This document shows, piece after piece, positions 1,216 through 51,759 of a stretch of 64,000 bases of DNA. The stretch spans positions 435,798,001 to 435,862,000 of the forward strand of contig NC_091283.1 in NCBI RefSeq assembly GCF_032444005.1, read 5' to 3'. Every line of letters begins with the position of its first letter. Position 1 is the stretch's first letter. Both the position numbers and the translations under genes were made by a program. A model generated the notes under the pieces. That model made no database searches and was not told the DNA's origin. It worked only from the letters and a program-made list of their open reading frames with translations. The DNA comes from Ranitomeya imitator. Taxonomy: Eukaryota.

Positions 1216-2479
1216 ACATGAAGGCACCAAAACGAAATTTGTTAAAATAATTCAAGCGTTATTAATGCTTCAAATATATAAGAAAATTAAGAAAAAAAAA
1301 GAAGGTATCAAAATTTTTTTTGTAGCAGATACATTTACCAGGTCTCTAAATACAGATCAATGTAATCACAAACATTTCATTATTATAGGTACAAATAAAT
1401 TAAATTCTATAAATTAGTAAAGTGCATAGTGCTATGATAAATGCAAGAGTTTTGCCTCAAAAATGTCAATGTTGTAATAATAACAGAATGGTGATAGAGC
1501 ACTACAAAGAAAGTGCTATAAACGTTGCCAAGGTTCAACCTGTTTTGTATCAGTTACAGTAGATACTGACATTTACCATACCACACTAAAAAAGAGGGGT
1601 CATGATAGAGCTCTGTATATTAGTATATAAAGTACAAGTGCCTTTCCTATTACCAGAGTTCCAAATAAAAATATGACCTCATTTATCACCAAAGGCAACC
1701 CAAAATATGAATCAAGAGAGCAAACATAACCAAAGTAATTACATGTTGTTACTGTTATAGCAAGATTGACCCATGTATGCCTGGGTTACCACTCCGACGA
1801 CACTGTTTCGCATTAGCTTTTTCAAAAGGGGCATTAACCATAAAGTGCCAAGATGCTCCTTAACCCCTTTACCCCCAAGGGTGGTTTGCACGTCAATGAC
1901 CAGGCCAATTTTTACAATTCTGACCACTGTCCCTTTATGACGTTATAACTCCGAAACGCTTCAACGGATCCTGGTGATTCTGACATTGTTTTCTCGTGAC
2001 ATATTGTACTTCATGATAGTGGTAAAATTTCTTTGATAGTACCTGCATTTATTTGTGAAAAAAACGGAAATTTGGTGAAAATTTTGAAAATTTCGCAATT
2101 TTCAAACTTTGAATTTTTATGCAATTAAATCACAGAGATATGTCACACAAAATACTTAATAAGTAACATTTCCCACATGTCTCCTTTACATCAGCATAAT
2201 TTTGGAACCAAATTTTTTTTTTGTTAGGGAGTTATAAGGGTTAAAAGTTGACCAGCAATTTCTCATTTTTACAACACCATTTTTTTTTAGGGACCACGTC
2301 TCATTTGAAGTCATTTTGAGGGGTCTATATGATAGAAAATGCCCAAGTGTGACACCATTCTAAAAACTGCACCCCTCAAGGTGCTCAAAACCACATTCAA
2401 GAAGTTTATTAACCCTTCAGGTGTTTAATAGGAATTTTTGGAATGTTTAAATAAAAATGAACATTTAACTTTTTTACAC

Positions 2480-4300
2480 AAAAAATTTACTTCAGCTCCA
2501 ATTTGTTTTATTTTACCAAGGGTAACAGGAGAAAATGGACCCCAAAAGTTGTTGTCCAATTTGTCCTGAGTACGCTGAAACCCCATATGTGGCAGTAAAC
2601 CACTGTTTGGGCGCATGGGAGAGCTCGGAAGGGAAGGAGCACCGTTTGACTTTTCAATGCAAAATTGACAGGAATTGAGATGGGACGCCATGTTGCGTTT
2701 GGAGAGCCACTGATGTGCCTAAACATTGAAACCCCCCACAAGTGACACCATTTTGGAAAGTAGACCCCCTAAGGAACTTATCTGGATGTGTGGTGAGCAC
2801 TTTGACCCACCAAGTGCTTCACAGAAGTTTATAATGCAGAACCGTAAAAAGTAAAAATAAAAAAATCATATTTTTTCACAAAAATTATATTTTTGCCCCC
2901 AATTTTTTATTTTTCCAAGGGTAAGAGAAGAAATTGGACCTCAAAACTTGTTGTCCAATTTGTCCTGAGTACGCTGATACCCCATATATGGCAGTAAACC
3001 ACTGTTTGGGCGCATGGGAGAGCTCGGAAGGGAAGGAGCGCCGTTTGACTTTTCAATGCAAAATTGACAGGAATTGAGATGGGACGCCATGTTGCGTTTG
3101 GAGAGCCACTGATGTGCCTAAACATTGAAACCCCCCACAAGTGACACCATTTTGGAAAGTAGACCCCCTAAGGAACTTATCTGGATGTGTGGTGAGCACT
3201 TTGACCCACCAAGGGCTTCACAGAAGTTTATAATGCAGAGCCATAAAAATAAAACAAAATTTTTTTCCCACAAAAATTATTTTTTAGCCCCCAGTTTTGT
3301 ATTTTCCCTAGGGTAACAGGAGAAATTGGACCCCAAAAGTTGTTGTCCAATTTGTCCTGAGTACGCTGATACCCCATATGTGAGGGGGAACCACCGTTTG
3401 GGCGCATGGGAGGTCTCGGAAGGGAAGGAGCGCCATTTGGAATGCAGACTTAGATGGAATGGTCTGCAGGCGTCACATTGCGTTTGCAGAGCCCCTAATG
3501 TACCTAAACAGTAGAAACCCCCCACAATTGACACCATTTTGGAAAGTAGACCCCCTAAGGATCTCATCTTGATGTGTTGTGAGAGCTTTGAACCCCCAAG
3601 TATTTCACTACAGTTTATAACGCAGAGCCGTGCAAATAAAAAATATTTTTTTTTCCACAAAAATTATATTTTAGCCCCCAGTTTTGTATTTTTCCAAGGT
3701 TAGCAGGAGAAATTGGACCCTAAATGTTGTTGTCCAATTTGTCCTGAGTACGCTGATACCTGATATGTGGGGGGGAACCACCGTTTGGGCGCATGGGAGG
3801 GCTCGGAAGGGAAGGAGCATCATTTGGAATGCAGACTTAGATGGATTGGTCTGCAGGCGTCACATTGCGTTTGCAGAGCCCCTAATGTACCTAAACAGTA
3901 GAAACCCCCCACAAGTGACCCCATATTGGAAGCTAGACCCCTCAATGAACTTATCTAGATGTGTTGTGAGAACTTTGAACCCCCAAGTGTTTCACTACAG
4001 TTTATAACGCAGAGCCGTGAAAATAAAAAATCTTTTTGTTTTCCCACAAAAATTATATTTAGCCCCCAGTTTTGTATTTTCCCAAGGGTAACAGGAGAAA
4101 TTGGTCCACAAAAGTTGTTGTCCAATTTGTCCTGAGTACGCTGATACCCCATATGTGAGGGTAAACCCCTGTTTGGGCACACGGGAGAGCTCGGAAGGGA
4201 AGGAGCACTGTTTTACTTTTTCAACGCAGAATTGGCTGGAATTGAGATCGGACGTGTTTGGAGAGCCCCTGATGTGCCGAAACAGTGGAAACCCCCCAAT
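2480..4300 (+). repeat. ~390-bp tandem subrepeats (about 5 units) inside piggyBac-like copy 1
   Basis: The motif GTAACAGGAGAAATTGGACCCC...GTCCTGAGTACGCTGATACCCCATATGTG recurs near 2521, 2921, 3313, 3700 and 4088. Confidence 0.9.
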
Positions 4301-4455: not shown

Positions 4456-4691
4456 NNNNNNNNNNNNNNNNNNNNNNNNNNNNNNNNNNNNNNNNNNNNN
4501 NNNNNNNNNNNNNNNNNNNNNNNNNNNNNNNNNNNNNNNNNNNNNNNNNNNNNNNNNNNNNNNNNNNNNNNNNNNNNNNNNNNNNNNNNNNNNNNNNNNN
4601 NNNNNNNNNNNNNNNNNNNNNNNNNNNNNNNNNNNNNNNNNNNNNNNNNNNNNNNNNNNNNNNNNNNNNNNNNNNNNNNNNNNNNNNNNNN
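4456..4691. other. Assembly gap (N run)
   Basis: Run of n characters. Confidence 1.
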
Positions 4692-7600
4692 AAAATGGAA
4701 ATAAATACTTTTTTTTATTTTTCCCTAACTAAGGGGGTGATGAAGGGGGGTTTGATTTACTTTTATAATGAGTTTTTTAGCGGATTTTTATGATTGGCAG
4801 CTGTCACACACTGAAAGACGCTTTTTATTGCAAAAAATATTTTTTGCAATACCACATTTTGAGAGCTATAATTTTTCCATATTTTGGTCCACAGAGTCAT
4901 GTGAGGTCTTGTTTTTTGCGGGACGAGTTGACGTTTTTACTGAAAACATTTTCGGGCACGTGACATTTTTTGATCGCTTTTTATTCCGATTTTTGTGAGG
5001 AAGAATGACCAAAAACCAGCTATTCATGAATTTCTATTGGGGGAGGCGTTTATACCGTTCCGCGTTTGGTAAAATTGATAAATCAATTTTATTCTTTGGG
5101 TCAGTACGATTACAGCGATACTTCATTTATATCATTTTTTTATGGTTTGGCGCTTTTATACGATAAAAACTATTTTACAGAAAAAATAATTATTTTTGCA
5201 TCGCTTTATTCTCAGGACTATAACTTTTTTATTTTTTTGCTGATGATGCTGTATGGCGGCTCGTTTTTTGCGGGACAATATGACGCTTTCATATTCATGG
5301 TTATTTATATCTGTCCTTTTGATCGCGTGTTATTCCACTTTTTGTTCGGCGGTATGATAATAAAGCGTTGTTTTTTGCCTCGTTTTTTTTTTTTTTTCTT
5401 ACGGTGTTTACTGAAGGGGTAACTAGTGGGACAGTTTTATAGGTCGGGTCGTTACGGACGCGGCGATACTAAATATGTGTACTTTTATTGGTTTTTTTTT
5501 ATTTAGATGAAGAAATGTATTTATGGGAATAATATTTTTTTTTTTTCATTATTTTGGAATATTTTTTTTAATTTTTTTTTACACATTTGGAAATTTTTTT
5601 TTTAACTTTTTTACTTTGTCCCAGGGGGGGACATCACAGATCAGTGATTTGACAGTTTGCACAGCACTCTGTCAGATCACTGATCTGACATGCAGCGCTG
5701 CAGCCTTCACAGTGCCTGCTCTGAGCAGGCTCTGTGAAGCCACCTCCCTCCCTGCAGGACCCGGATCAGCGGCCATCTTGGATCCGGGGCTGGAGGGAGC
5801 AGGGAGGGAGGTGAGACCCTCGCAGCAACGCGATCACATCGTGTTGCTCCGGGGGTCTCAGGGAAGCCCGCAGGGAGCCCCCTCCCTGCGCGGTGCTTCC
5901 CTGCACCGCCGGCACATCGCGATCATGTTTGATCGCGGTGTGCCAGGGGTTAATGTGCCGGGGGCTGTCCGTGACCGCTCATGGCACATAGTGCCGGATG
6001 TCAGCTGCGATAAGCAGCTGACACCCGGCCGCGATCGGCCGCGCTCCCCCCGTGAGCGCGGCCGATCGGCTATGACGTACTATCCCAACCAGGGTCAGAT
6101 AAGCCCAGGGCACCTCGACGGGATAGTACGTCTAAGGTCACAGAGGGGTTAAATACCCATTCCACAAACGTGATTGGATGAGCCATCAGGAAGTCTATGT
6201 GTATCGGCACATGTAGCGTTTACATTCCCTCCTCCATTCAAAAGTGACTTTCGTTCACCTCGTTGGACACACAAGCTTGGAATACATAGTGCTCACGGTG
6301 AGCTGTGGCCCAAAGGGGAAAGGTCTATAAGGGATAATGTGAATAAAGTCTATTGTTCGTGACGCAACCTGTGGTTCTCGATCAGTAGGGACCGACGCCG
6401 CTTAAAAGGGTCCTCTGGGGTGATGGTGGGGCGGCTAGATGTTGACGCCTCCCAGAGGTGAAGCGGGGTCTCCAGGGCTTCCCAAGGGTATGGCACCGAT
6501 GATGTGGTGGATGATATAGTAAATAACAAGGACACAGGTTTGCAGTCTTTACCTGGTTTACTGATGAAAGCAGTCCTCAGTCCAGAGTACCAAGTGCAGG
6601 GAAGCTGTGGTCTGGCCGGCTTGGAGGCAATAGGAGATCCCTCTCCCAGGTGAGGTCCTTAAGCCTTTCCTACTTGTGCTAAGATGGCGAGGTCCCTGCG
6701 GCTTGAAGCTTAGTTGCAAAGTCCCCTCTCTCCTGTCCTAAGACAGATATCTGTACGATAGGCAGTGAAAGCCTGTTTATAGGATCTCTATCATGACACA
6801 GGCTCTCAAGTTACTGCTTCCCCTCAGACTTGGTGCAGGTAATTGACATACAATCCTATGCCCTCTGGTGCATCCAGGAGAACAACATGACCTCGGGCTC
6901 CCGGGACCCAGCTTCTGTGCTCTAGCTCCTAGGGTGTCCTTCCGCCGTTCACCTGCTGAGCCTCTTCCTCCTTTGTGCTTCTTCCCTCTAAGCTCCTCCA
7001 CTATTCAAGTCCTTCAAGTTATCACTCTTTCCAGGGATCGCAGCTCCCACATGGGTGCTCGACCCCTCTGTCTGTTTCAGACGTCCTTCTCATCTCCTCA
7101 CTTCTCTACAACTGTCTGACTCCTCCTCCAGACCAGGATACATAAATTCTAAGGAAGCACCCCTGAATATGAGTCCTGAGCTCCCCCTCCAGGCCTAGAT
7201 TCAGATGTGTTGAATGTGAGTGTCCTGATAGACAGAATCTCCCTTGCCTCCAAGCGTGACATCACCCTCCCCGAAAGGAAGGCAACATCACTGCAACAAC
7301 CGGTTACCTGGGATGTTGCACCCCCCCACCCGGTGACTCCAGTACTTCCGGACTGGGAAAAGGAACCATAAACAACAGTTTACAATATGCAAAATAAAAC
7401 ATTTTTGGAATGCTTAAGAACAGGTGTAACAAATTAACATAAACTTTGACTTCCCTTTATGGGAGGAATTAATATTTGAACGTTGCAAACATATTTAAAC
7501 CAATATACTAACTTTCAAAAATATATAACCGTACTATCACAGACTATGCAATTACCCTCTAAGGGTAGACTATCTTCACAATTAGAGTGCTCAACTTTTC

Positions 7601-8152
7601 TCATAACCGTCGACTACCTTTACAGGTATACTACATCAAATTTACTTAGTTCAAAAGTGCAAAGTTTAATCTACAAAACTCTCTAGCATATCAAAATTAA
7701 TTCTAACTTTCTAACTTTACTCAGTACTGAGGTAGTGCAATTGTTTCATCCAAACTAATATTCAAGTCCAACAATAACATTCTTGAACAGCAGCAACGAT
7801 GCGAGGGACCCGTTATCAACCCCCAAAGTAGGCTCAATGTGTTCTGCCGCGCCAATGGGTTTTTCTTCAGGTCCCTATGTAGGCAATCAACCGTTAAAGG
7901 CCACTTTGGAACAGTCTCTTTAAAGATTCCACGTAAAACCAGTAGAAAGCACCTAAGGAGGTGCCAACTATTTACAATACAGTTTTTGGAACATCCATTG
8001 ACCATGATCTCACTGTCTCTTTAAATTTTTGAAACTTCAAGGAACAGTGATTTCAACTTTCAAAAACAATCATTTGAACTTCCAAATGGAAACCTGGCCA
8101 GGTTAAACAAAACTTTTGAACTTTCATAACAGTCCACAGTCACATTATTTAT

Positions 8153-9273
8153 TCAGATTGAAGGCTTCTTCTTCCAAGGTAGTACCTGTGCATTTGGACG
8201 TATGCCAGGTACCACATAAAGTTCATCAATACTCAAAATGGGAGTTTGAGTGCTCCTTGAATTTTGTTCAAGTTCGGGTGCTCTGCTTGGGGCAGGTGTA
8301 GATGTCACCTTGCCAGGTGAGGGTGCTGTTGAACGAAGTGGGGCTGTTTGTGGTGGCTCAGGGTCATGTGCTGGTGACCTAGTTACTTTTGTAGCACATT
8401 TATGCACATGCAGGGCATACCACCCTTTTTCTCCCCAGTGTCTGGTGTAGGTGATGCGGTCACCGGGGTATGGGTCCCTGTCCGGGTGTCCCTCTTGTAG
8501 GTGGGGTTCCACATCATGCCTGGTGACGAAGATCTTCTGCTGCACGCATTGTTCTGTAATGCATCCCCAGCCGGTGTTAATGCAGAAGGCTACCACAGTC
8601 CCAATCCTCCATGGACCCCTTTCCTCATGGATTGCTCTCCTATTCTGCACTTTAGCCTGCAGGTTTTTTTCTTTTGCAGCTCTGCGCTGGAGTTCCTGCT
8701 CCTTGTCCTCCTGCTCCTGCTTGCTTGCCTGCTCCTGGCAGTACTTTCTCTGGCTGACAATTTCTAGGTATTCTCCCTCAGCCTGGCTCTCCCCGGGAAC
8801 CCAATCAGGTCAGTGCCGGAGTGCTTCTACTGGAAGGTCAACCATTCCCCGTGCACGTCTGGGGCCTCACTCGTTGGCTGTAGCGGGGCTTCAGTGGTTT
8901 GTAATGTCTCCCAGGACCATTCTCACTTGAGGAGGCTGCACACCCGGCTGGGTGGTAGGGGTGGTGGAGCGTCTACGGGCCCTAGCAGGGTGTCCTCGGC
9001 TACCGGGGCACGGTCGGTGTTATTACCTGCCACTGCGGCGTCTCCGGTGCCGGGCTCCTCCCCTGCAGGCTGGGATTCCAGAAGCTGGCTGAGCTGCTGC
9101 TTCCAGGCGTTTGTGGCTGTGCGGAACCAGGACCTCCGGAGCTGACGGCACAGCTCCTCCACTTCTGCATGGAGGACCTCTGGGTTCATTGGTGACAGCC
9201 AGTCTCCTTCCTCCGATTGGCTGCGACAGCTGTGGGCTTTCTCCCCCTCCTCCGGGTGACCTTCGCTTGCCAT
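8153..9273 (-). pseudogene. Disrupted ~370-aa ORF of the LTR element: N-terminal helical segment, charged coiled-coil, cold-shock (Y-box-like OB-fold) domain, Pro/Thr-rich tail
   Basis: ATG at 9273 (MASEGHPEEG...), in-frame TGA at 8925-8923 and a frameshift near 8830-8800. It then reads ...QEQEDKEQELQRRAAKEKNLQAKVQNRR...IGTVVAFCINTGWGCITEQCVQQKIFVTRHDV...PGDRITYTRHWGEKGWYALHV. This aligns with YBX1 LGTVKWFNVRNGYGFI..DVFVH..GEKGAEAANV with a single 1-aa gap. Confidence 0.7.
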
Positions 9274-9935
9274 CTTGCCAACCAGGTTATCTTCCGCGTC
9301 TTCCTGTTGGTTCTGCTCCTCCTCCTTTCGTGGGCGGTTTCTTCTCATCTTTCTCCCGCCATCCCAGACTAGAAGGCAGATCCCTTTCGTTGATGGGCAT
9401 ATCGCTCGAACATAATAGTACCTGTGAGGCGCGGCCATTATTTCCACGCCATTGTTCCAAGCTCTGCCCACGATAACACGCCCCACTCCTCCAACACGCC
9501 ACATGGTGCTGTAATGGCGGCGGTTTTGGCGGTATTTCAAAGTTAACAGTCTCTCAGCACAAAACAGTCTCTTAGGCGCACATGACCCATTTCAATGGTT
9601 CGGTCCATCCTGTTCGTGATGCCAAAATGGGTCGCCCGCCAAGGCCTTGGGGCACTCGGTACTGGGTTCGGTCTTAAAGGTGATGTTACGGTGGCTGCAA
9701 CCCGGTCCGTGGCCCTGGGCACCCAATTAAAGGGGAAAGGTCTTTAAGGGATATTGTGAATAAAGTCTATTGTTCGTGACTCCACCTGTAGTTCTTGGTC
9801 AGTAGGGATCGACGCTGCTTAAAGGGGTCCTCTGGGGTGATGGGAGGGCGGCTAGATGGTGACGCTTCCCTCAGGTGAAGCGGGGTCCCCAGAGCTTCCT
9901 ACGTGTATGGCACCGATGATGTGGTGGATAATATA

Positions 9936-11226
9936 CAGTACAGACCAAAAGTTTGGACACACCTCTCATTTAAAGATTTTTCTGTATTTTCATGACTATG
10001 AAAATTGTACATTCACACTGAAGGCATCAAAATTATGAATTAACACATGTGGAATTATATAAAGTGGGAAACAACTGAAATTATGTCTTATATTCTAGGG
10101 TCTTCAAAGTAGCCACCTTTTGCTTTGATGACTGCTTTGAACACTCTTGGCATTCTCTTGATGAGCTTCAAGAGGTAGTCACCGGGAATGGTTTTCACTT
10201 CACCGGTGTCCCCTGTCAGGTTTAATAAGTGGGATTTCTTGCCTTCTAAATGGTGTTGGGACCATCAGTTGTGTTGAGCAGAAGTCTGGTGGATACACAA
10301 CTGATAGTCCTACTGAATAGACTGCTAGAATTTGTATTATGGCAAGAAAAAAGCAGCTAAGTAAAGAAAAACGAGTGGCCATCATTACTTTAAGAAATGA
10401 AGGTCAGTCAGTCCGAAAAATTGGGAAAACTTTGAACGTGTCCCCAAGTGCAGTGGCAAAAACCATCAAGCACTACAAAGAAACTGGCTCACATGAGGGC
10501 CACCCAGGAAAGGAAGACCAAGAGTCACCTCTGCTTCTGAGGATAAGTTTATCCGAGTCACCAGCCTCAGAAATTGCAGGTTAACAGCAGCTCAGATTAG
10601 AGACCAGGTCAATGCCACACAGAGTTCTAGTAGCAGACACATCTCTACAACTGTTAAGAGGAGACTTTGTGCAGCAGGCCTTCATGGTAAAATAGCTGCA
10701 ACAGGCAGAAGAGACTTGTTTGGGCTAAAGAACACAAGGAATGGACATTAGACCAGTGGAATTTGTGCTTTGGTCTGATGAGTCCAAATTTGAGATCTTT
10801 GGTTCCATCCACCGTGTCTTTGTGCGATGCAGAAAAGGTGAACGGATGGACTCTACATACCTGGTTCCCACCGTGAAGCATGGAGGAGGAGGTGTGATTG
10901 TGTGGGGGTGCTTTGCTGGTGATACTTTTGGGGATTTATTCAAAATTGAAGGCATACTGAACCAGCATGGCTACCACAGCATCTTACAGCAGCATGCTAT
11001 TCCATCCGGTTTGTGTGTAGTTTGACCATCATTTATTTTTCAACAGGACATGGACCTCAAATACACCTCCAGGCTGTGTAAGGGCTATTTGACCAAGAAG
11101 GAGAGTGATGGGGTGCTACGCCAGATGAGCTGGCCTCCACAGTCACCAGACCTGAACCCAATCGAGATGGTTTGGGGTGAGCTGGACCACAGAGTGAAGG
11201 CAAAAGGGCCAACAAGAGCTAAGCAT
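9936..11226 (+). mobile_element. Tc1/mariner transposon, 3'-truncated, degenerate transposase
   Basis: TA|CAGTACAGACCAAAAGTTTGGACAC left end. Transposase fragments MARKKQLSKEKRVAIITLRNEG (10339), [33 protein letters not shown]. The right TIR is absent and the sequence joins LTR sequence at 11227. Confidence 0.92.
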
Positions 11227-12439
11227 CCCAGCTTCTGCGCTCTAGCTCCCAGGGCGTCTTTCCGCCATTCACCTGCTGAGGCTCTTCCTCCTCTATGTTT
11301 CTTCCCAGGGGTTGCAGCTCCCACGTGGCTGCTCGGCCTCTCTGTCTGTTTCAGACATCATTTTCCTCTCCTCACTCCTCTACAACTGGCTGACTCCTCC
11401 TCCAGACCAGGATACATAAAGTCTAAGTAAGCTTCCCTGAATCTGGGTCAGGAGCTCCCCCTCCTGGCCTAGATTCAGATGTGTTGTGTTGTGAATTCTG
11501 TGGCCAAGCTCCCTCCTGTGGTCGAGAGTGGTACTTCGGCTGGTTCTGTCTATGAGCTTCCTTTGGTGGATGAGAGTGGTACTGCGGCTTCTGAGTTTCC
11601 TTCCTCAGGTGATGAGGTTAAGTCGTTAGGTGCTGCTCTATTTAACTCCACCTGGTGCTTTGATCCTGGCCTCCAGTCAATGTTCTAGTATTTGTCTTGC
11701 TTCCTCCTGGATCGTTTCTGTGGCCTGTCTATCCTGCATAAGCTAAGTTTTGCTTGTGTTATTTTTGTTTGCTATTTTTTCTGTCCAGCTTGCTATGTTG
11801 GTTTTTCTTGCTTGCTGGAAGCTCTGAGACGCAGAGGGAGCACCTCCGTACCGTTAGTCAGTGCGGAGGGTCTTTTTGCCCCTCTGCGTGGTTGTTTGTA
11901 GGTTTTTGTGTTGACCGCAAAGCTATCTTTCCTATCCTCGGTCTATTCAGTAAGTCGGGCCTCACTTTGCTAAATCTATTTCATCTCTGTGTTTGTATTT
12001 TCATCTTACTCACAGTCATTATATGTGGGGGGCTGCCTTTTCCTTTGGGGAATTTCTCTGAGGCAAGGTAGGCTTATTTTTCTATCTTCAGGGCTAGTTA
12101 GTTTCTCAGGCTGTGCCGAGTTGCATAGGGAGCGTTAGGCACAATCCACGGCTACCTCTAGTGTGGTGTGTTAGGATTAGGGATTGCGGTCAGCAGAGTT
12201 CCCACGTCTCAGAGCTCGTCCTTTGTTTTTGGTAATTGTCAGGTCACTTTGTGTGCTCTGAACTTCAATGTCCATTGTGATTCTGAATTACCTGTTCATA
12301 ACAGTACTGGAGGCCCAAAGTACTAATGCTTCTCAATAGAGGGAAAAGAGAAGTTCTGAGACCATTTTTTTTTCTTTGCACTGTGTTCTGTCTTTCTTTT
12401 CCCCTTTACATCAGGGTGGTTCAGAACACAGGTGTGGAC

Positions 12440-13327
12440 ATGGACATTCAAGGTCTGTTCTCTTTGATGGATAATCTCGCTATAAATGTACAGAATATTC
12501 AAGATTTAGTGGTTCAGAATCCTATGTTAGAACCTAAAATTCCTATTCCTGAGTTATTTTCTGGAGATAGAGCTAAGTTTTTGAATTTTAGAAATAATTG
12601 TAAACTATTTCTGGCTTTGAAACCCCGCTCCTCTGGTGACCCAGTTCAACAAGTTAAGATCATTATTTCTTTATTACGTGGCGACCCTCAAGACTGGGCA
12701 TTTTCCCTTGCGCCAGGAGATCCTGCATTATGTAATATTGATGCGTTTTTTCTGGCGCTCGGATTGCTGTACGACGAACCAAATTCAGTGGATCACGCAG
12801 AGAAAAATTTGCTGGCTCTGTGTCAGGGTCAGGATGAGATAGAGATTTATTGTCAGAAGTTTAGAAAGTGGTCCGTGCTCACTCAATGGAATGAATGTGC
12901 GCTGGCAGCTATTTTCAGAAAGGGTCTCTCTGAAGCCCTTAAGGATGTCATGGTCGGATTTCCTATGCCTGCTGGTCTGAATGAGTCTATGTCTTTGGCC
13001 ATTCAGATCAGTCGACGCTTGCGCGAGCGTAAATCTGTGCACCATTTGGCGGTATCATCTGAGCATGAACCTGAGCCTATGCAGTGCGATAGGACTTTGA
13101 CCAGAGCTGAAAGGCAAGAACACAGACGTCAGAATGGGCTGTGTTTCTACTGTGGTGATTCCACTCATGCTATCTCCGATTGTCCTAAGTGCACTAAGCG
13201 GTTCGCTAGGTCTGCCACCATTGGTACGGTACAGTCGAAATTTCTTTTGTCCGTTACTTTGATCTGCTCTTTGTCTTCCGATTCTGTCATGGCATTTGTG
13301 GATTCAGGCGCTGTCCTATTCCATTGA
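12440..13327 (+). CDS. Gypsy gag with CCHC zinc knuckle, running into a truncated aspartic protease
   Basis: LEPKIPIPELFSGDRAKFLNFRNNC, LLRGDPQDWA, CFYCGDSTHAISDC and FVDSGA motifs. Confidence 0.85.
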   Translation: MDIQGLFSLMDNLAINVQNIQDLVVQNPMLEPKIPIPELFSGDRAKFLNFRNNCKLFLALKPRSSGDPVQQVKIIISLLRGDPQDWAFSLAPGDPALCNIDAFFLALGLLYDEPNSVDHAEKNLLALCQGQDEIEIYCQKFRKWSVLTQWNECALAAIFRKGLSEALKDVMVGFPMPAGLNESMSLAIQISRRLRERKSVHHLAVSSEHEPEPMQCDRTLTRAERQEHRRQNGLCFYCGDSTHAISDCPKCTKRFARSATIGTVQSKFLLSVTLICSLSSDSVMAFVDSGAVLFH

Positions 13328-13508
13328 GAGGAATTGATGCTGACCATGTGCATGGCTCCTGCGCACCAGGAGGATATTCGCTTTCTGGTGTTGCATAATC
13401 TGCATGATGTGGTCGTGTTGGGGTTACCATGGCTACAAGTCCATAACCCAGTATTAGATTGGAAATCAATGTCTGTGTCCAGCTGGGGTTGTCAGGGGGT
13501 TCTTTTTT

Positions 13509-15086
13509 GTGGCCAAGAAGGATGGTTCGCTGAGACCTTGTATTGATTACCGCCTTCTAAATAAAATTACGGTCAAATTTCAGTACCCCTTGCCGCTGCT
13601 GTCTGATTTGTTTGCTCGGATTAAGGGGGCTAGTTGGTTCACCAAGATAGATCTTCGTGGTGCGTATAATCTTGTGCGTATTAAACGGGACGATGAATGG
13701 AAAACAGCATTTAATACGCCCGAAGGCCATTTTGAGTACCTGGTTATGCCATTCGGACTTTCTAATGCTCCATCAGTGTTTCAGTCCTTTATGCATGACA
13801 TCTTCCGAGAGTACCTGGATAAATTCCTGATTGTATTCTTGGATGATATTTTGGTCTTCTCGGATGATTGGGAGTCTCATGTGAAGCAGGTCAAAATGGT
13901 GTTCCAGGTCCTGCGTGCTAATTCTTTGTTTGTGAAGGGGTCAAAGTGTCTCTTTGGTGTTCAGAAGATTTCATTTTTGGGGTTCATTTTTTCTCCTTCT
14001 ACTATCGAGATGGACCCTGTTAAAGTTCAGGCCATTTATGATTGGACTCAGCCAACATCTCTGAAGAGTCTGCAGAAGTTCCTGGGCTTTGCTAATTTTT
14101 ATCGTCGCTTCATCGCTAATTTTTCTAGCATTGCTAAACCGTTGACTGATTTAACCAAGAAGGGTGCTGATGTGGTCAATTGGTCCTCTGCGGCTGTAGA
14201 GGCTTTTCAGGAGTTGAAGCGTCGTTTTTCTTCTGCCCCTGTGTTGTGCCAACCAGATGTTTCGCTTCCGTTCCAGGTCGAGGTTGATGCTTCCGAAATT
14301 GGAGCAGGGGCTGTTTTGTCGCAGAGAAGTTCTGATTGCTCGGTGATGAAACCATGCGCCTTCTTTTCCAGGAAATTTTCGCCTGCTGAGCGAAATTATG
14401 ATGTTGGCAATCGAGAGTTGCTAGCCATGAAGTGGGCATTCGAGGAGTGGCGTCATTGGCTTGAAGGAGCTAAGCATCGCGTGGTGGTCTTGACTGATCA
14501 CAAAAACTTGACTTATCTCGAGTCTGCCAAACGGTTGAATCCTAGACAGGCTCGTTGGTCGCTGTTTTTCTCCCGTTTTGACTTTGTGGTTTCGTACCTT
14601 CCGGGCTCTAAAAATGTGAAGGCGGATGCCCTGTCTAGGAGTTTTGTGCCCGATTCTCCGGGTTTGTCTGAGCCAGCGGGTATTCTCAAAGAGGGGGTAA
14701 TTTTGTCTGCCATCTCCCCTGATTTGTGGCGGGTGCTGCAAAAATTTCAGGCTAATAGACCTGACCGTTGCCCAGCGGAGAAACTGTTTGTCCCTGATAG
14801 GTGGACGAATAAAGTTATCTCTGAGGTTCATTGTTCGGTGTTGGCTGGTCATCCTGGAATCTTTGGTACCAGAGATTTGGTGGCTAGATGCTTTTGGTGG
14901 CCATCTCTGTCGCGGGATGTGCGTTCTTTTGTGCAGTCCTGTGGGATTTGTGCTCGGGCTAAGCCCTGCTGTTCTCGTGCCAGTGGGTTGCTTTTGCCCT
15001 TGCTGGTTCCGAAGAGGCCTTGGACACATATCTCTATGGATTTTATTTTGGATCTCCCCGTCTCTCAAAGAATGTCGGTCATTTAG
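13509..15086 (+). CDS. Gypsy pol fragment: reverse transcriptase, RNase H and integrase zinc finger; integrase core truncated
   Basis: KKDGSLRPCIDYR, KIDLRGAYN, MPFGLSNAPSVFQ, FLDDILVFS, EVDASEIG, NYDVGNRELLA, TDHKNL, H-x4-H...C-x2-C, PWTHISMDFI; then stop and deletion into the 3' LTR. Confidence 0.93.
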   Translation: MAKKDGSLRPCIDYRLLNKITVKFQYPLPLLSDLFARIKGASWFTKIDLRGAYNLVRIKRDDEWKTAFNTPEGHFEYLVMPFGLSNAPSVFQSFMHDIFREYLDKFLIVFLDDILVFSDDWESHVKQVKMVFQVLRANSLFVKGSKCLFGVQKISFLGFIFSPSTIEMDPVKVQAIYDWTQPTSLKSLQKFLGFANFYRRFIANFSSIAKPLTDLTKKGADVVNWSSAAVEAFQELKRRFSSAPVLCQPDVSLPFQVEVDASEIGAGAVLSQRSSDCSVMKPCAFFSRKFSPAERNYDVGNRELLAMKWAFEEWRHWLEGAKHRVVVLTDHKNLTYLESAKRLNPRQARWSLFFSRFDFVVSYLPGSKNVKADALSRSFVPDSPGLSEPAGILKEGVILSAISPDLWRVLQKFQANRPDRCPAEKLFVPDRWTNKVISEVHCSVLAGHPGIFGTRDLVARCFWWPSLSRDVRSFVQSCGICARAKPCCSRASGLLLPLLVPKRPWTHISMDFILDLPVSQRMSVI

Positions 15087-17089
15087 GTGGTTTGTGATCG
15101 CTTCTCTAAGATGGTCCATTTGGTGCCCTTGTCTAAATTGCTTTGTTTTTGTTTATGGCAATTGTCAGGTCACTTTGTGTGCTCTGAACTTCAATGTCCA
15201 TTGTGATTCTGAATTACCTGTTCATAACAGTGTTGAATGTGAGTGCCTTACCTGATAGACAGAATCTCCCTTGCCTCCAAGCATGACATCACCCTCCCCG
15301 AAAGCAAGGCAACATCACTGCAACATCCGGTTAACTGGGGTGTTGCATGCGCATGACTGGAAGTCAAGAAGCATAGGGAATAGAGCATGCACATCATCTG
15401 GATATCGATACATGACTCTCAATGAGGGTCGCTCCACCCATGCGTAGTACAAAGGAGGCATGGTTCCGTAGTCGACGGTGCAGACGATTCCATATGAATT
15501 TTAAAAGGAATGCTAAATATCTAACATGCCGAGTAAAGCAGATCTGTGACAACAGGAATGTGAATGAACAGTGAAATAAGTATATAACAGATCAGACATG
15601 ATACTGTAAAAACTATTATAAACATAGGTATGTTAAGTGAGTAAATCAGATTGTAAATGAATACCAGAGCAGAAAGGTATCCATAAAATTGTTAGCTTAG
15701 AAATTTTTGAGGAAAGGGGTACAAATCACGATATTATTATTATTAATATTGCCTCTGAAGGTGTTAGATTTGCCACTTCTCTGCCACTTGAAATTATGGA
15801 TCTCAGACTTACAGTCTTTTTCTCAAAGCATTTCTCTGCTTTAAATACTTGGTCATTAATGGGAGCTCCTACTTCAATGGAGGTTGTAGTGTCAACTCTC
15901 AATCTCTCTTTTTCTTCCCCTGTTTTAATTACTTTTTCTCTCCCCTAGATATAATTAGTTTCTCTTTCCCAGCTATAATTAATCTCATATGTTCAATGTG
16001 AGGAGGACATGTTCCCTCCATGAAGATGTCTTATGGATTTTTAATTTCTCTTTTTGAGAGGTAGGATGTCTGATTCATGTCAGTGTGAGTATTCACCATG
16101 GAGGGTAGACTATGGTCAATATAAATATGGGCGGTCTCAGGTTCTGTTCTACTTAGAAGCCTACCACGCACCTCACCTAACATGAATCCCATGAAATATA
16201 TTCCCAGTATTTTAGCACAAACTATGGATTAAGCAGAAGAGACATAGCGCTGTAGATTCTAGAGTTAGGTTGGCTGGAGTCCCCCTGGTTCAATGACATG
16301 GTCGCCTCTGTGATGGACATGCTGCTATTATTCCCTTCAAATAATGGTTTTGTATTGGAATAGGAACTGCTGAGTGAGCAGAGCAGTCACAGACTATCTT
16401 AGCCTCCATGACCTCTCTGTACAGATGTGGTACTGTGTATCAGCGAGATCCATGACCTTGCCTTTTTATCTCTAGAAACTCTTCTTGGAGGCTGATAAGG
16501 ACTTTGATATTTCAGTTCATAGCTCCGAACCTGTCCAATCTGACTCACATCATATCCATCAAACAAAAGCCTGGATGCTGCAGCAGTAAAAAGGTTATTG
16601 AGGACATTTCTTTGGCAAGTCAAGGACTAAGTAGCAGTGATCAAGGCCGGTCAAACTGACAGGCTGAAAATAAGCCAGATCACAACAGGTCTGTGCGTCA
16701 TCACTGAGAACTCTCTACTCTTCGTTGCCAGGAAGTGGATAATACAAATATTATGAGTGACCTCTCTGGTACCTATGAAGCGGGGCTCAGGGCTGGTGCT
16801 GTGGGCCTGCTACTGCTTATATTCACACTGACACCCCACTAACATACAGTGTCCTATTCCATGTGTGCTGTGCTGTAAGGTTCACTCTGCACTCACTTGT
16901 AGGCCAGACGCCTCCCTACATCCATGTTCAGGGATCCAGGATCAGCCACGCACATATTAGGAGACACTTGGCACTTTTCAGCAAGTTTCTCTTTACTGGA
17001 CATTTCAGATACAACAGTCTGCAACATGCGGTATCTGGCACAGCACCCTTCGGTTGTTGTTCCGTTCACATAGTACAATGTAAGGCTAA

Positions 17090-28428: not shown

Positions 28429-31400
28429 TCTATCTATATAATTGTCTAAGGGGCACTTCCGTCTTTCTTTCTTTCTGTCTGTCTGTCCCGGATATTCATT
28501 GGTCGCGGCCAGCCAGTGGGCGTAGACAAAAGGGCAGGGGAGGCCAGGAAGTATGCAGAGCGAGTCCCCGCCCACACCGTACAGGCCCAGCCAGAAGCAC
28601 TGTAAAGGGGGCGGAGCCGGCTGGGACCATGGGCACTGTTGGGCCTACCGCGGCAAAAAGCCGGAGACTAAATTAGCGGCCGCGGCTCGTGGCCAGTCAG
28701 TACAGGCCTGGCCAGAAGCGCTGCAAAGGGGGTGGAGTCGCCGTGAGGAAGGCGGAGCCGGCCAGGATCATGGACACGGCTGGGCAATATACTACGTGGC
28801 TGTGCAATATACTACGTGGCTGGGCAATACAGTACGTGACTGGCCAATATACTACGTGGCTGGGCAATATAGCATGTGACTGGGCAATATACTACATGGT
28901 TGGGCAATATACTACGTGGTTGGGCAATATACTACGGGCTGTGCAATATACTACGTGGCTGGGCAATATAGTACGTGACTGGGCAATATAGTACGTGACT
29001 GGGCAATATATTACGTGGCTGGGCAATATACTACGTGACTGCTATATACTACATGACTGGGCAATATACTATGTGGTTGGGCAATATACTACGTGGCTGT
29101 GCAATATACTACGTGGCAGGTCAATATACTACGTGACTGGGCAATATAGCACGTGACTGGGCAATATACTATGTGGCTGTGCAATATACTACGTGGGTGG
29201 GCAATATACTACGTGGCTGCGCAATATACTACGTCACGTGACTAGGCAATATACTACGTGACTGGGCAATATACTACATGACTGGGCAATATACTACGTG
29301 ATTGGGCAATATACTACATGGTTGGGCAATATACTACGTGGGTGGGCAATATACTACGTGGCTGCGCAATATACTACGTCACTGGACAATATACTACGTG
29401 ACTGGGCAATATACTACGTGGTTGGGCAATATACTACGTGACTGGGCAATATACTGCGTGACTGGACAATATAGTACGTGACTGGCCAATATACTACGTG
29501 GCTGGGCAATATACTACGTGACTGGGCAATATACTACGTGACTGGGCAATATACTACGTGGCTGGGCAATATACTACGTGACTGGGCAATATACTACGTG
29601 GCTGGGCAATATACTACGTGGCTGGCCAATATACTACGTGACTGGGCAATATACTACGTGACTGGGCAATATACTACGTGGCTGGGCAATATAATACGTG
29701 GCTGGCCAATATACTACGGATGGAAGGTGAGTATATACTACTTGTGATGTGCTATATACTCTGTGGCTGTGCTATATACTACATTGCTGTGCAATATACT
29801 ATGTGGCTGTTCAATATACTATGTGGCTGTGCAATATATTACGTGGCTGTGCAATATACTACGTGGCTGTGCAATATACTAAGTGTCTGTGCAATATACT
29901 ATGTGGGCTGTGCAATATACTGCGTGGGCTGTGCAATATACTACGTGGCTGGGCAATATATTACGTGGCTGGGCAATATAGCAAGTGACTGGGCAATATA
30001 CTACGTGGTTGGGCAATATACTACGTGGTTGGGCAATATACTACGGGCTGTGCAATATACTACGTGGCTGGGCAATATAGTACGTGACTGGGCAATATAG
30101 TACGTGACTGGGCAATATATTACGTGGCTGGGCAATATACTACGTGACTGCTATATACTACATGACTGGGCAATATACTATGTGGTTGGGCAATATACTA
30201 CGTGGCTGTGCAATATACTACGTGGCAGGTCAATATACTACGTGACTGGGCAATATAGCACGTGACTGGGCAATATACTATGTGGCTGTGCAATATACTA
30301 CGTGGGTGGGCAATATACTACGTGGCTGCGCAATATACTACGTCACGTAACTAGGCAATACACTACGTGACTGGGCAATATACTACATGACTGGGCAATA
30401 TACTACGTAATTGGGCAATATACTACATGGTTGGGCAATATACTACGTGGGTGGGCAATATACTACGTGGCTGCGCAATATACTACGTCACTGGACAATA
30501 TACTATGTGACTGGGCAATATACTACGTGGTTGGGCAATATACTACGTGACTGGGCAATATACTGCGTGACTGGACAATATAGTACGTGACTGGCCAATA
30601 TACTACGTGGCTGGGCAATATACTACGTGACTGGGCAATATACTACGTGACTGGGCAATATACTACGTGGCTGGGCAATATACCACGTGACTGGGCAATA
30701 TACTACGTGGCTGGGCAATATACTACGTGGCTGGCCAATATACTACGTGACTGGGCAATATACTACGTGACTGGGCAATATACTACGTGGCTGGGCAATA
30801 TAATACGTGGCTGGCCAATATACTACGGATGGAAGGTGAGTATATACTACTTGTGATGTGCTATATACTCTGTGGCTGTGCTATATACTACATTGCTGTG
30901 CAATATACTATGTGGCTGTTCAATATACTATGTGGCTGTGCAATATATTACGTGGCTGTGCAATATACTACGTGGCTGTGCAATATACTACGTGGCTGTG
31001 CAATATACTATGTGGGCTGTGCAATATACTGCGTGGGCTGTGCAATATACTACGTGGCTGGGCAATATATTACGTGGCTCTGCAATATACTACGTGTCTG
31101 TGCTATATACTGCGTGGGCTGTGCAATATACTACGTGGCTGGGCAATATATTACGTGGCTGTGCAATATACTACGTGGCTGTGCAATATACTACGTGGCT
31201 GTGCAATATACTATGTGGGCTGTGCAATATACTGCGTGGGCTGTGCAATATACTACGTGGCTGTGCAATATACTACGTGGCTGTGCAATATACTACATGG
31301 ACTGTGCAATATACTGCGTGGGCTGTGCAATATACTACGTGGCTGGGCAATATGCTACATGGCTCTGCAATATACTACGTGTCTGTGTTATATGCTACGT

Positions 31401-34400
31401 GGTCTGTGCAACATACTACCTGGCTGTGCAATATACTACGTGGGCTGGGCAATATATTACGTGGCTGTGCAATATACTACATGGCTGTGCAATATACTAC
31501 TTGGCTGTGCAATATACTACATGGGCTGTGCAATATACTGCGTGGGCTGTGCAATATACTACGTGGCTGGGCAATATACTATGTGGCTCTGCAATATACT
31601 ACGTGTCTGTGCTATATACTATGTGGTCTGTGCAATATACTACGTGGGCTGGGCAATATACTACGTTGGCTGGGCAATATACTACGTGGCTGGGCAATAT
31701 ACTACGTAGGCTGGGCAATATACTACGTGGTCTGTGCAATAGGCTGTGCAATATACTACGTGGCTGTGCTATATACTATGTGGGCTGTGCAATATACTAC
31801 ATGGCTGGACAATATACTACGTGGCTGGGCAATATACTATGTGACTGGGCAATATAGCACGTGACTGGGCAATATACTACGTGGCTGGGCAATATAATAC
31901 GGGCTATGCAATATACTACATGGCTGGGCAATATAGTACGTGACTGGGCAATATAGTACGTGACTGGGCAATATACTATGTGACTGCGCTATATACTACG
32001 TGACTGGGCAATATACTACATGGTTGGGCAATATACTACGTGGCTGTGCAATATACTACGTGGCTGGGCAATATACTACGTGACTGGACAATATAGCACG
32101 TGACTGGGCAATATACTATGTGGTTGGGCAATATACTACGTGGCTGGGCAATATACTACGTGACTGGGCAATATAGCACGTGACTGGGCAATATACTATG
32201 TGGTTGGGCAATATACTACTTGGCTGTGCAATATACTACGTGACTGGGAAATATAGTACGTGACTGGGCAATATACTACGTGACTGGGCAATATACTACG
32301 TGATTGGACAATATACTACGTGGCTGGGCAATATACTACGTGGCTGCGCAATATACTACGTCTCTGTGCAATATAGTATGTGACTGGGCAATATACTACG
32401 TGGTTGGGCAATATACTACGTGGCTAGGCAATATACTACGTGGCTCTATGCTGTATACTACGTGACTGGGCAATATACTACGTGACAGGGCAATATATTA
32501 CGTGGCTCTATGCTGTATACTACGTGACTGGGCATTATACTATGTGGCTGGGCAATATACTACGTGGCTGTGCAATATACTACGTGGCTGGGCAATATAC
32601 TACGTGGCTGGGCAATATACTACGTGACTGGGCAATATACTACGTGGCTGGGCAATATACTACGTAGCTGGGCAATATACTACGTGGCTGGGCAATATAC
32701 TACGTAGCTGGGCAATATACTACGTTACTGGGCAATATACTACGTGACTGGGCAATATACTACGTGGCTGGGCAATATACTACGTAGCTGGGCAATATAC
32801 TACGTGGCTGGGCAATATACTACGTAGCTGGGCAATATACTATGTTACTGGGCAATATACTACGTGACTGGGCAATATACTACGTGGCTGGGCAATATAC
32901 TACGTGGCTGGGCAATATACTACGTAGCTGGGCAATATACTACGTGGCTGGGCAATATACTACGTAGCTGGGCAATATACTACGTGGCTGGGCAATATAC
33001 TACGTAGCTGGGCAATATACTACGTGGCTGGGCAATATACTACGTAGCTGGGCAATATACTACGTGGCTGGGCAATATACTACGTAGCTGGGCAATATAC
33101 TACGTGGCTGGGCAATATACTACGTGACTGGGCAATATACTACGTGACTGGGCAATATACTACGTGACTGGGCAATATACTACGTGGCTGGGCAATATAC
33201 TACGTGGCTGGGCAATATACTACGTAGCTGGGCAATATACTACGTGGCTGGGCAATATACTACGTGACTGGGCAATATACTACGTGACTGGGCAATATAC
33301 TACGTGACTGGGCAATATACTACGTGACTGGGCAATATACTACGTGACTGGGCAATATACTACGTAGCTGGGCCATATACTACGTGGCTGGGCAATATAC
33401 TACGTAGCTGGGCAATATACTACGTGGCTGGGCAATATACTACGTGACTGGGCAATATACTACGTGACTGGGCAATATACTACGTGACTGGGCAATATAC
33501 TACGTGACTGGGCAATATACTACGTGGCTGGGCAATATACTACGTAGCTGGGCAATATACTACGTAGCTGGGCAATATACTACGTAGCTGGGCAATATAC
33601 TACGTTACTGGGCAATATACTACGTGACTGGGCAATATACTACGTGACTGGGCAATATACTACATGACTGGGCAATATACTACGTAGCTGGGCAATATAC
33701 TACGTAGCTGGGCAATATACTACGTGGCTGGGCAATATACTACGTGACTGGGCAATATACTACGTGACTGGGCAATATACTACGTGGCTGGGCAATATAC
33801 TACGTAGCTGGGCAATATACTACGTAGCTGGGCAATATACTACGTAGCTGGGCAATATACTACGTTACTGGGCAATATACTACGTGACTGGGCAATATAC
33901 TACGTGACTGGGCAATATACTACATGACTGGGCAATATACTACGTAGCTGGGCAATATACTACGTAGCTGGGCAATATACTACGTGGCTGGGCAATATAC
34001 TACGTGACTGGGCAATATACTACATGACTGGGCAATATACTACGTAGCTGGGCAATATACTACGTAGCTGGGCAATATACTACGTGGCTGGGCAATATAC
34101 TACGTGGCTGGGCAATATACTACATGACTGGGCAATATACTACATCGCTGGGCAATATACTACGTGGCTGGGCAATATACTACGTAGCTGGGCAATATAC
34201 TACGTGGCTGGGCAATATACTACGTGACTGGGCAATATACTACGTGACTGGGCAATATACTACGTGACTGGGCAATATACTACGTGACTGGGCAATATAC
34301 TACGTGACTGGGCAATATACTACGTGGCTGGGCAATATACTACGTGGCTGGGCAATATACTACGTGGCTGGGCAATATACTACGTAGCTGGGCAATATAC

Positions 34401-34497
34401 TACGTTACTGGGCAATATACTACGTGACTGGGCAATACACTATGTGGACATGCATATTCTAGAATACCCGATGCGTTAGAATCGGGCCACCAACTAG
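28429..34497 (+). mobile_element. Non-autonomous Helitron with a giant internal satellite
   Basis: A|TC 5' end (TCTATCTATATAATTGTCTAAGGGGCACTTCCGTC). Subterminal hairpin CCCGAT-GCGTTAGA-ATCGGG. 3' end CTAG|T at 34494-34497. No TSD. Both termini match the copy starting at 55452. Confidence 0.88.
28785..34445 (+). repeat. ~5.7-kb tandem array of a ~20-bp unit GGCAATATACTACGTG(A/G)CTG
   Basis: Read directly. Near-perfect 20-bp phase from ~32580 to 34436; internal 1109-bp duplication. Confidence 0.97.
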
Positions 34498-44607: not shown

Positions 44608-46454
<1,847 letters not shown>

Positions 46455-48666: not shown

Positions 48667-49490
48667 TAGGGTTAGGGTTAGGGCTAGGGTTAGGGCTAGA
48701 GTTAGGGCTAGGGTTAAGGCTACAGTTAGGGTTGAGGCTAAGGTTAGGGTTGGGGCTAAAATTAGGGATAGGATTACATTTACAGTTGGGAATAGGTTTG
48801 GGTTGGGATTAGGGTTAGGGGTGTGTCAAAGTTAGGGGTGTGGTTAGGGTTAATGTTGGGATTAGGGTTAGGGATGTGTTTGGATTAGGGTTTCAGTTAT
48901 AATTGGGGGGTTTCCACTGTTGGGGCTAAAGCTAGGGATAGGGTTGGGGCTAGGGATAGGGTTAGGGTTGGGGCTAGGGTTAGGGTTGGAGCTAGGGTTA
49001 GGGTTGGAGCTAGGGTTAGGGTTGGAGCTAGGGTTAGGGTTGGAGCTAGGGTTAGGGTTGGAGCTAGGGTTAGGGTTGGAGCTAGGGTTAGGGTTGGAGC
49101 TAGGGTTAGGGTTGGAGCTAGGGTTAGGGTTGGGGCTAGGGTTAGGGTTGGAGCTAGGGTTAGGGTTGGAGCTAGGGTTAGGGTTGGAGCTAGGGTTAGG
49201 GTTGGGGCTAGGGTTAGGGTTGGAGCTAGGGTTAGGGTTGGAGCTAGGGTTAGGGTTGGAGCTAGGGTTAGGTTTGGGGCTAGGGTTAGGGCTAGGTTTG
49301 GGGCTAGGGTTAGGGTTGGGGCTAGGGTTAGTGTTGGGTCTAGGGTTAGGGCTACAGTTAGGGTTGGGGCTAAAGTTAGGGTTAGGATTACATTTACGGT
49401 TGGGATAAGGGTTAGGGGTGTGTCAGCATTAGGGGTGTGGTTAGGGTTACCGTTGGGACTAGGGTTAGGGGTGTGTTTGGATTAGGGTTT
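48667..49490 (+). repeat. Telomere-like (TTAGGG) tract with an expanded 18-bp higher-order unit GGGTTAGGGTTGGAGCTA
   Basis: Read directly; expansion at ~48920-49390. Confidence 0.95.
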
Positions 49491-50969: not shown

Positions 50970-51650
50970 ATGTCTAGAAGGACTAAGTCTCACACAGTCC
51001 TGTATACTTCATGCATTACTTGCCGGGTTTCTTTTCCGCATGCGCAAACTAGCCATTTCTGTGAAGCTTGCGATTCCGAACGCGCTCAGGAGCCCCCGCC
51101 TGCTATCCCGCCTGCTACCCCGCTTGCCATTCTGCCGGGTATGCCTGTTTCTGAGACTGCGGCACCTCCCCCTGAGTGGGTCGTATCCTTAACGCAATCT
51201 ATGGCGTCTCTAACAAAGGCGGTTGAGTCCCTTCAAGGACGCGGGGGAAGCCCTGTCAGGGACGTTCATCCATCTGTTCCGGAAAGATCCTCCGATTCTC
51301 AGGATCCTCCGGCCTGCAGGGGCCGTACTCCCTCTAGGCAGACGCGGGGGAAGCGTACCCATACAGCGTCTCCCGGTCCGTCAGGTGCATCTGCATCTGT
51401 GAATTCCGTCTCTCGGTCTCCCTCACCTGTGGGAGTGAATGAACATGGTTCGGACTTTGACTCTGAAGGGTCTTTTGATTTAGAAGCTCCTGATTATCAG
51501 GAATCAGTTGACAGTCTCATTGAGGCCGTTAACCAGTCTTTGGGAGTAGAGGATGTAGCCACCTTACCTTCAGGTCATAAGGTGTCTTTTAAAAGATTCA
51601 AGCAACCTCATAAGGTGTTTTCTTCTCATCCTGAGTTTGAGGATCTAGTT
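50970..51650 (+). pseudogene. DIRS gag-like ORF1, truncated by deletion
   Basis: MSRRTKSHTVLYTSCITCRVSF...FCEAC Cys motif; Ser/Pro-rich region; LIEAVNQSLG. Confidence 0.65.
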
Positions 51651-51759
51651 CACATGCTTCTCTCAACCTCCGTTGCCGTCTGTCTCCTCGGGTCAGGCAA
51701 TCTCTCATATGGTGGATGAGGAGCTCCTCTCTGCGGCAGGGGAAAGCCTTTTCTCCAGT

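Follow-up and report, generated by a model that had tools for sequence, protein, structure and literature searches.

How did a decayed gene for a cold-shock domain (CSD) protein come to lie between two long direct repeats in the genome of the poison frog Ranitomeya imitator? The locus is part of a stretch of 64,000 nt (RefSeq assembly GCF_032444005.1, contig NC_091283.1, positions 435,798,001 to 435,862,000 of the forward strand), which is hereafter called the window and in which positions are counted from the first letter. A reading made from the letters alone (hereafter, the sequence-only reading) had described it as a long terminal repeat (LTR) retroelement whose only cargo is a Y-box-like CSD protein. 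Our secure result concerns the cargo: there is a new, lineage-specific family of intronless CSD genes, found only in dendrobatoid frogs in the databases searched, and the core of the locus is a dead copy of this Dendrobatoidea family. As for the way in which the copy arrived, we tentatively favor a decayed, non-autonomous LTR-type unit in minus-strand orientation whose only open reading frame (ORF) is the CSD gene, a reading that we regard as nearly an even proposition.

A family of cold-shock domain genes in dendrobatoid frogs

The sequence-only reading had described a decayed minus-strand ORF with a charged coiled-coil region followed by a CSD-like peptide. This description held, and the peptide is present at 8602-8399. 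The sole close match of the ORF was P0001 (LOC143808358), an intact protein of 382 aa from Ranitomeya variabilis, with 66-69% identity. Three lesions were found in the window ORF (in-frame stops at 8925-8923 and 8829-8827 and a frameshift near 8782-8800), and the Phe of RNP1 is replaced by Cys. In the family tree, the terminal branch of the window copy was about three times as long as that of P0001 (0.34 and 0.12, respectively), which fits relaxed constraint on the window copy. The pieces of the ORF were searched separately, not as a joined or consensus sequence. The first exon of P0008, a gene model of R. variabilis, likewise preserves about 100 nt of the leader upstream of the ORF (to 9375), and the point at which this model is spliced out reads AG|GTAAT in the window copy.

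An exhaustive phmmer search over 1.84 billion protein representatives found 21 proteins; word-indexed protein searches, in which shared 5-mers are needed, gave almost nothing besides P0001. The family members were P0001, P0007, P0009, and the chimeric model P0008 in R. variabilis, P0004 and the chimeric model P0005 in R. imitator, P0003 in Phyllobates terribilis, and P0002 and P0006 in Anomaloglossus baeobatrachus. A profile search added P0032 of Phyllobates terribilis, a CSD-truncated copy fused to a Harbinger-type DDE transposase. Four of the approximately ten loci (P0032, P0008, P0005, and P0004) are chimeric gene models, one of which spans 20 kb. The remaining phmmer matches were dinoflagellate, bacterial, and metagenomic multi-CSD proteins, an unrelated 3,055-aa repeat protein (P0012), and P0031. 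The last of these is a distant relative of 350 aa, encoded at 384-1436 of the Logan contig L001 (run ERR14218477). It has the same layout as the family, namely an 'NPDVL' helix followed by a CSD with a long loop, and it would widen the range of the family past the four dendrobatoid species; L001 and the window had no DNA in common. At least ten annotated loci in four dendrobatoid species, several of them with intact ORFs, were thereby assigned to the family, and the earlier supposition of a family rather than a single copy was borne out. Our literature search returned no paper describing this frog CSD family or a CSD-bearing retroelement.

All of the intact members (6 of 6) are single-exon genes, with a gene range equal to the coding sequence. 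Their ORFs of 245-549 aa begin with an N-terminal part that is variable and of low complexity, which is followed by a long charged helix and by a CSD of the Y-box type. Conservation is seen in this domain and in the helix before it, whereas the N- and C-terminal parts are highly divergent and of low complexity. The members in R. variabilis are distributed over at least three chromosomes. Furthermore, N-terminal pieces of the family occur in gene models of other kinds: the piece in P0008, together with the approximately 100 nt of leader, forms the first exon of a KRAB-ZNF gene model spliced over 85 kb, and the piece in P0005 forms, by itself, the first exon of a V2R-like receptor gene model. 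Such dispersed loci, with N-terminal pieces as foreign first exons, are the behavior expected of a dispersed, promoter-carrying unit.

Could the likeness to a CSD have arisen by chance in a random ORF? Against the Pfam CSD profile (PF00313, OB fold; curated cut-off, 27 bits), the window copy scored 12.8 bits with an E of 0.11 over profile positions 3-65 of 66, and this score, taken alone, would be compatible with chance. The intact relatives scored higher. P0001 gave 24.1 bits, or 28.0 bits when the domain was cut out alone, and P0003, P0004, and P0006 exceeded the cut-off with 36.9, 33.7, and 32.1 bits, respectively. A frog-only profile was built from eight frog sequences; an earlier mixed profile, whose alignment held true bacterial Csps, was dropped. 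When the frog-only profile was compared with the PDB, the best eight matches were all CSDs of YB-1 or YBX2 (E 3e-10 to 9e-10), and bacterial Csp, CSDE1, CRHSP-24 (E 2.5e-4), and LIN28B (E 4e-3) ranked below the Y-box CSDs. The alignment of this profile to the Y-box CSD contained one single-residue gap over 68 residues, the long beta3-beta4 loop included.

The predicted structure was in agreement with these scores. The AlphaFold2 model of P0001:205-300, whose input alignment contained true bacterial and protist CSDs, showed five strands after a helix with a predicted local distance difference test (pLDDT) score of 84; this alignment-based domain model replaced a single-sequence AlphaFold model of P0001 with a pLDDT of 42. 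In a Foldseek search of the PDB with the domain model, the top 50 matches were all CSDs, with CRHSP-24 at rank 3, and the target-normalised template modelling (TM) scores were approximately 0.26-0.88, the lowest values being those for chains of multi-domain CSD proteins. In the viral structure library, the model matched only Csp-like proteins of phages and giant viruses and no retroviral protein, as would be expected if, as the sequence-only reading had stated, the CSD is not a standard retroelement domain. Taken together, the intact full-length homologue, the members above the Pfam cut-off, the E of 3e-10 to YB-1, and the match of the predicted fold to CSD structures rule out chance as the origin of the likeness.

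Most family members keep the RNP motifs G-W/Y-G-F-I and V/I-F-V, from which P0007, P0009, and P0032 deviate. In the alignment to Y-box CSDs, the RNP2 His and the Trp preceding the beta1 Phe are replaced in the frog family. Two of the four base-stacking residues of YB-1 in its structures with RNA (the equivalents of Trp65 and His87) are replaced in this alignment. A gag-like fold in the N-terminal part was considered and rejected: this region had no Pfam match and is predicted to be mostly disordered except for helices. Judged by profile comparison and predicted fold, on which Pfam, the frog-only profile, and the model of P0001 agree, the family domain is a genuine CSD with the Y-box type as its closest relative, as had been proposed for the window copy. 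By prediction, the protein most likely forms oligomers and binds single-stranded RNA or DNA.

The direct repeats and their proposed reading as part of a mobile unit

Two long direct repeats bracket the ORF, as LTRs would. Repeat A is an uninterrupted copy of 1,009 bp, and the second copy, repeat B, lies in the same orientation and is split into three pieces. The identity between A and B was 90.5%, pooled over 581 aligned nt in the three pieces of B, and the paired LTR-like repeats of the sequence-only reading are accordingly present. Since the gene has one of these 1-kb repeats only 455 nt before its ATG and the other only 830 nt past its stop codon, independent insertions are unlikely.

The gaps in repeat B are occupied by two younger transposons, and the A/B pair is therefore old. 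A Tc1/mariner fragment, with transposase remnants at 10339-11226, entered at a TA, and the equivalent of A 6519-6906 was lost from B in association with it. The second insertion is a Ty3/gypsy element, in which gag with a zinc knuckle was found at 12326-13327 and reverse transcriptase (RT), RNase H, and the integrase zinc finger at 13509-15086; it has an internal deletion, and its integrase core and most of its 3' LTR are gone. The 6-bp target duplication of this element, GTGTTG, is seen at 11481-11486 and 15230-15235. The sequence-only reading had seen no gag knuckle, protease, RT, or integrase in an internal region of about 2.3 kb. For the whole span 6314-15347 such an absence does not hold, because the gypsy element with its gag and pol, a later and independent insertion, is nested there together with the Tc1 fragment. 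It is true of the internal region between A and B (7321-9728, 2,408 bp), in which neither strand gave a trace of gag, protease, RT, integrase, or env.

The best LTR-like signals are located on the same strand as the ORF (minus). There, the G-run GGGTGGGGGGG adjoins the TG of repeat A and belongs to a set of just 4 G/C-rich 11-mers of this kind in the 64 kb, and a TGG follows repeat B at a distance of 3 nt. The primer-binding site (PBS) of tRNA-Ser type and the polypurine tract of the sequence-only reading were apparently placed on the plus strand, opposite to the ORF, and neither was confirmed. The plus strand continues past repeat A (7321 on) with a C-run and without TGG, and two putative tRNA-Ser 16-mers, which are unreliable as queries, matched nowhere in the window at up to three mismatches. 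No tRNA gene was found in the window. The purine run that was probably meant as the polypurine tract, AAAGGGGAAAGG, opens each of the two repeat copies on the plus strand with its 12 nt and so is located inside both repeats, not solely upstream of the 3' one.

The scheme that we infer from this arrangement takes the repeats as LTRs and the unit as mobilised in trans, and it assigns a role to the protein, as follows. In minus-strand order, repeat B would be the 5' LTR with the promoter, followed by the 455-nt leader, the CSD ORF, the 830-nt AT-rich tail, the G-run, and repeat A; the G-run may have served as the plus-strand primer, with repeat A as the 3' LTR. A unit of approximately 4.4 kb would have brought in the CSD ORF as its only gene and, because it is without gag and pol, would have been supplied with RT and integrase in trans by an autonomous element. 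The protein, a putative helix-mediated oligomer with a single-strand-binding CSD, could have coated or chaperoned RNA, which is the job of nucleocapsid or LINE-1 ORF1p. After the insertion, the copy would have decayed through the stops, the frameshift, and the loss of the RNP1 Phe, and the upstream repeat would have been hit by Tc1 and gypsy.

Several findings weigh against this scheme, and most of them would suit a different origin, in which the ORF is a pseudogene of a host gene family, produced by segmental or retrogene-type copying, and the repeats are a local duplication or dispersed repeats with no role in movement. We hold this origin to be possible, although on the doubtful side. The canonical TG/CA was found at one repeat end only: the minus-strand TG corresponds to the plus-strand CA at 7319-7320 and 15346-15347, and the other end reads AAAGGGG (plus) or CCCCTTT (minus) in both copies, not CA. 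There was no 4-6-bp target-site duplication, as the flanks are TGGCCC (6306-6311) and TGCGCA (15348-15353), and no match of the TGCGCA type was present in 6154-6311. No signature of a tRNA T-arm complement was seen after repeat B on the minus strand, and no further copy of repeat A or B was found anywhere in the 64-kb window. Of the earlier proposal of an LTR retroelement, only the direct repeats stand, whereas the target-site duplication is absent, TG/CA is limited to a single repeat end, and a tRNA-like PBS was not seen. The intact relatives bear on the same question. In RefSeq, these single-exon genes are given as ordinary genes beside host genes (WD40, guanylate cyclase, fibrinogen-like), and no RT or gag gene is annotated within 10 kb of them. 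The protein databases held approximately ten family loci, so that this is not a high-copy family, and a CSD conserved amid divergent flanks fits a host gene equally well. However, four points are difficult to reconcile with a host pseudogene. Chance bracketing by same-orientation 1-kb copies within 0.5-0.8 kb is unlikely, and the G-run adjoins the TG end on the very strand of the ORF. The window showed no sign of a tandem gene array and no second CSD match elsewhere. Moreover, the exonisation of N-terminal family pieces by gene models of other kinds suggests a mobile unit that is dispersed.

The surroundings of the repeats were also searched for other arrangements. A tandem LTR-internal-LTR array was rejected, as homology past the repeat ends (6154-6311 versus the leader, 9274-9728) gave alignment scores no higher than those of shuffles; a junction-like similarity of 9400-9730 to the 3' end of repeat A likewise did not exceed shuffles. 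The Rfam scan of 5500-16000 gave sub-threshold noise only, and scans of metagenome and viral contigs with two repeat-derived words gave no match. A dispersed repeat of approximately 1.45 kb, without a protein-family match, has a copy 158 bp left of repeat A. Its three copies, at 4710-6153 (+), 59455-60887 (+), and 48635-47198 (-), are 84-87% identical and end in ...GGGGTTAA. An empty site was sought by means of the copy at 4710-6153; because all copies end at the identical base, no empty site was obtained.

The same repeats could also be the ends of an endogenous retrovirus from which gag-pol-env was deleted internally, while a CSD accessory ORF was kept between the LTRs. Extra ORFs of this sort are present in complex retroviruses of fish and amphibians. 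The 1-kb, LTR-sized repeats, the long leader, a minus-strand TATAAA within the repeat (complement of about 6775-6782), and an ORF unrelated to gag and pol would all suit such a remnant. The internal region, however, holds no residue of a retroviral gene on either strand, as described above; none of the 1.8 billion protein representatives joins the family domain to RT, gag, or env; the viral fold library contained no retroviral CSD; and neither the PBS nor the CA end is present. We regard this explanation as quite improbable.

A processed retrocopy made by a long interspersed nuclear element (LINE), which landed by coincidence in an older LTR element or between solo LTRs, would account for a family that is intronless and dispersed. 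The sequence 3' of the ORF on the minus strand, however, contains no poly(A) or A-run, short flanking duplications are absent, and no internal remnant of a host element is recognisable. Indeed, the AT-rich stretch at 7332-8152 had no protein-family match, no remnant of a poly(A) tail, and no second copy within the window. Such a coincidence is, in our view, very unlikely.

If the decayed, non-autonomous LTR-type unit is the right reading, a broader one can be built on it: a gag- and pol-less family of LTR type, with a helix and a Y-box-type CSD as the RNA chaperone that replaces nucleocapsid, mobilised in trans, and with some copies expressed or domesticated. We consider this extended version unlikely as a whole. 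The protein may serve either the element, as a chaperone like nucleocapsid or ORF1p, or the host, by masking mRNA as Y-box proteins do or by controlling transposons. The features of the locus are collected in Table 1.

Table 1 Features of the locus in window positions. The LTR assignments are those of the minus-strand reading and are putative.
Feature	Position	Strand	Remarks
Direct repeat A	6312..7320	-	Minus-strand start TGCAAC, end CCCCTTT (not CA); putative 3' LTR in minus-strand reading
G-run GGGTGGGGGGG	7321..7331	-	Adjoins TG start of repeat A; polypurine-tract-like
AT-rich non-coding stretch, 3' of ORF	7332..8152	-	GC 31-45%
Decayed ORF of the frog CSD family	8153..9273	-	Collinear with the full 382-aa P0001, 66-69% identity
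Cold-shock domain in ORF	8399..8602	-	RNP1 reads GWGCI; GWGFI in intact relatives
Leader, repeat B to start codon	9274..9728	-	455 nt
Repeat B piece 1	9729..9935	-	Corresponds to A 6312-6518, 89% identity
Tc1/mariner fragment	9936..11226	+	HTH_SB and DDE_3 remnants; starts CAGTACAGACC after TA; 3' end missing
Repeat B piece 2	11227..11486	-	Corresponds to A 6907-7212, 89% identity over aligned bases, 46-nt indel
Ty3/gypsy element	11487..15229	+	817-bp 5' LTR, gag with CCHC knuckle, RT, RNase H, integrase zinc finger
Repeat B piece 3	15230..15347	-	Corresponds to A 7207-7320, 96% identity; outer end of unit

Other features of the window

The window has the character of repeat-rich vertebrate DNA, with satellites, Tc1/mariner remnants, and a gypsy element. 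A satellite with a 20-nt unit, GGCTGGGCAATATACTACGT, occupies 5.7 kb at 28778-34447 with approximately 282 copies and recurs at 61223-61351; it explains why three long ORFs overlap at 30787-31864 and why the GC skew is positive at this place. A satellite of 387 bp forms two arrays, with approximately 5 copies each and 85% matches, at 2470-4298 and 56659-58868, symmetric around the region. At 48665-49470, there is an interstitial telomere-like degenerate array with an 18-nt unit and TTAGGG-type repeats (approximately 45 copies), which adjoins a copy of the 1.45-kb repeat.

Further Tc1/mariner remnants (HTH_SB, HTH_Tnp_Tc3_2, and DDE_3) were observed at 39688-40233 (-), 45639-46106 (-), and 62258-62869 (+). 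A GC-rich block at 50940-52903 contains two long plus-strand ORFs, and one of them (51809-52903) showed a weak match (E 0.01) to the N-terminal SAM-like domain of tyrosine recombinases; this block may be an element of DIRS or Crypton type. Positions 4456-4691 are a run of 236 N.

Comparison with known systems

The frog family shares with the Y-box proteins (YBX1/YB-1, YBX2/MSY2, and frog FRGY2) a five-stranded CSD fold, as judged from the model, together with the long beta3-beta4 loop, a GEKG-type turn, and, in most members, motifs of the RNP1 (G-aromatic-G-F-I) and RNP2 (V-F-V) type. In contrast, it is only approximately 27-30% identical to an otherwise almost invariant domain. It lacks the A/P-rich N-terminus and the C-terminal alternating basic and acidic islands of the Y-box proteins, and it has a long charged helix before the CSD, family-specific flanks, and genes that are intronless, multi-copy, and, in the databases searched, dendrobatoid-only. 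Given this identity, an alignment confined to the CSD, and the replacement of the two stacking residues named above, the family does not consist of orthologues or paralogues of YBX as these terms are usually understood. The CSD fold is also common to CARHSP1/CRHSP-24, CSDC2, LIN28, and CSDE1/UNR, among which CRHSP-24 and LIN28B gave much weaker profile scores than the Y-box CSDs; the frog family differs from these proteins in its architecture and has no CCHC knuckles. Y-box proteins mask mRNAs in frog oocytes, and for this reason a lineage-specific offshoot can reasonably be considered for a part in regulating germline RNA or in controlling transposons. Even if the repeats are not LTRs, this would still be a new, fast-evolving, intronless dendrobatoid CSD family that is intact in several species.

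Maize Bs1 and the acutely transforming retroviruses are elements with a captured host gene. To our knowledge, host-gene capture has rarely been described for animal LTR retrotransposons. Gene-capturing LTR elements are known at least from the cases in rice and sorghum that one source describes (PMC3726574). The frog unit has in common with gene-capturing LTR elements the long direct repeats around an intronless host-like ORF, the lack of gag and pol, and a proposed dependence on a helper; it differs from them in having no target-site duplication, no CA at one of the repeat ends, no recognisable PBS, and no known helper. If the repeats are LTRs, the unit would be a rare animal LTR element built on a host-type gene and, as far as we know and could find, the first retroelement with its own CSD RNA-binding protein.

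The likeness to LINE-1 ORF1p and retroviral nucleocapsid would be a functional analogy only, in which a putative oligomerising helix is followed by a small single-strand-binding domain and the protein is the product of a unit that resembles a mobile element. LINE-1 ORF1p uses an RRM and a C-terminal domain and nucleocapsid uses CCHC knuckles, whereas the frog protein has a CSD of OB fold and no sequence relation to either. If the repeats are true LTRs, the family would accordingly represent an independent answer to the problem of coating and chaperoning RNA that gag/nucleocapsid and LINE-1 ORF1p have each solved.

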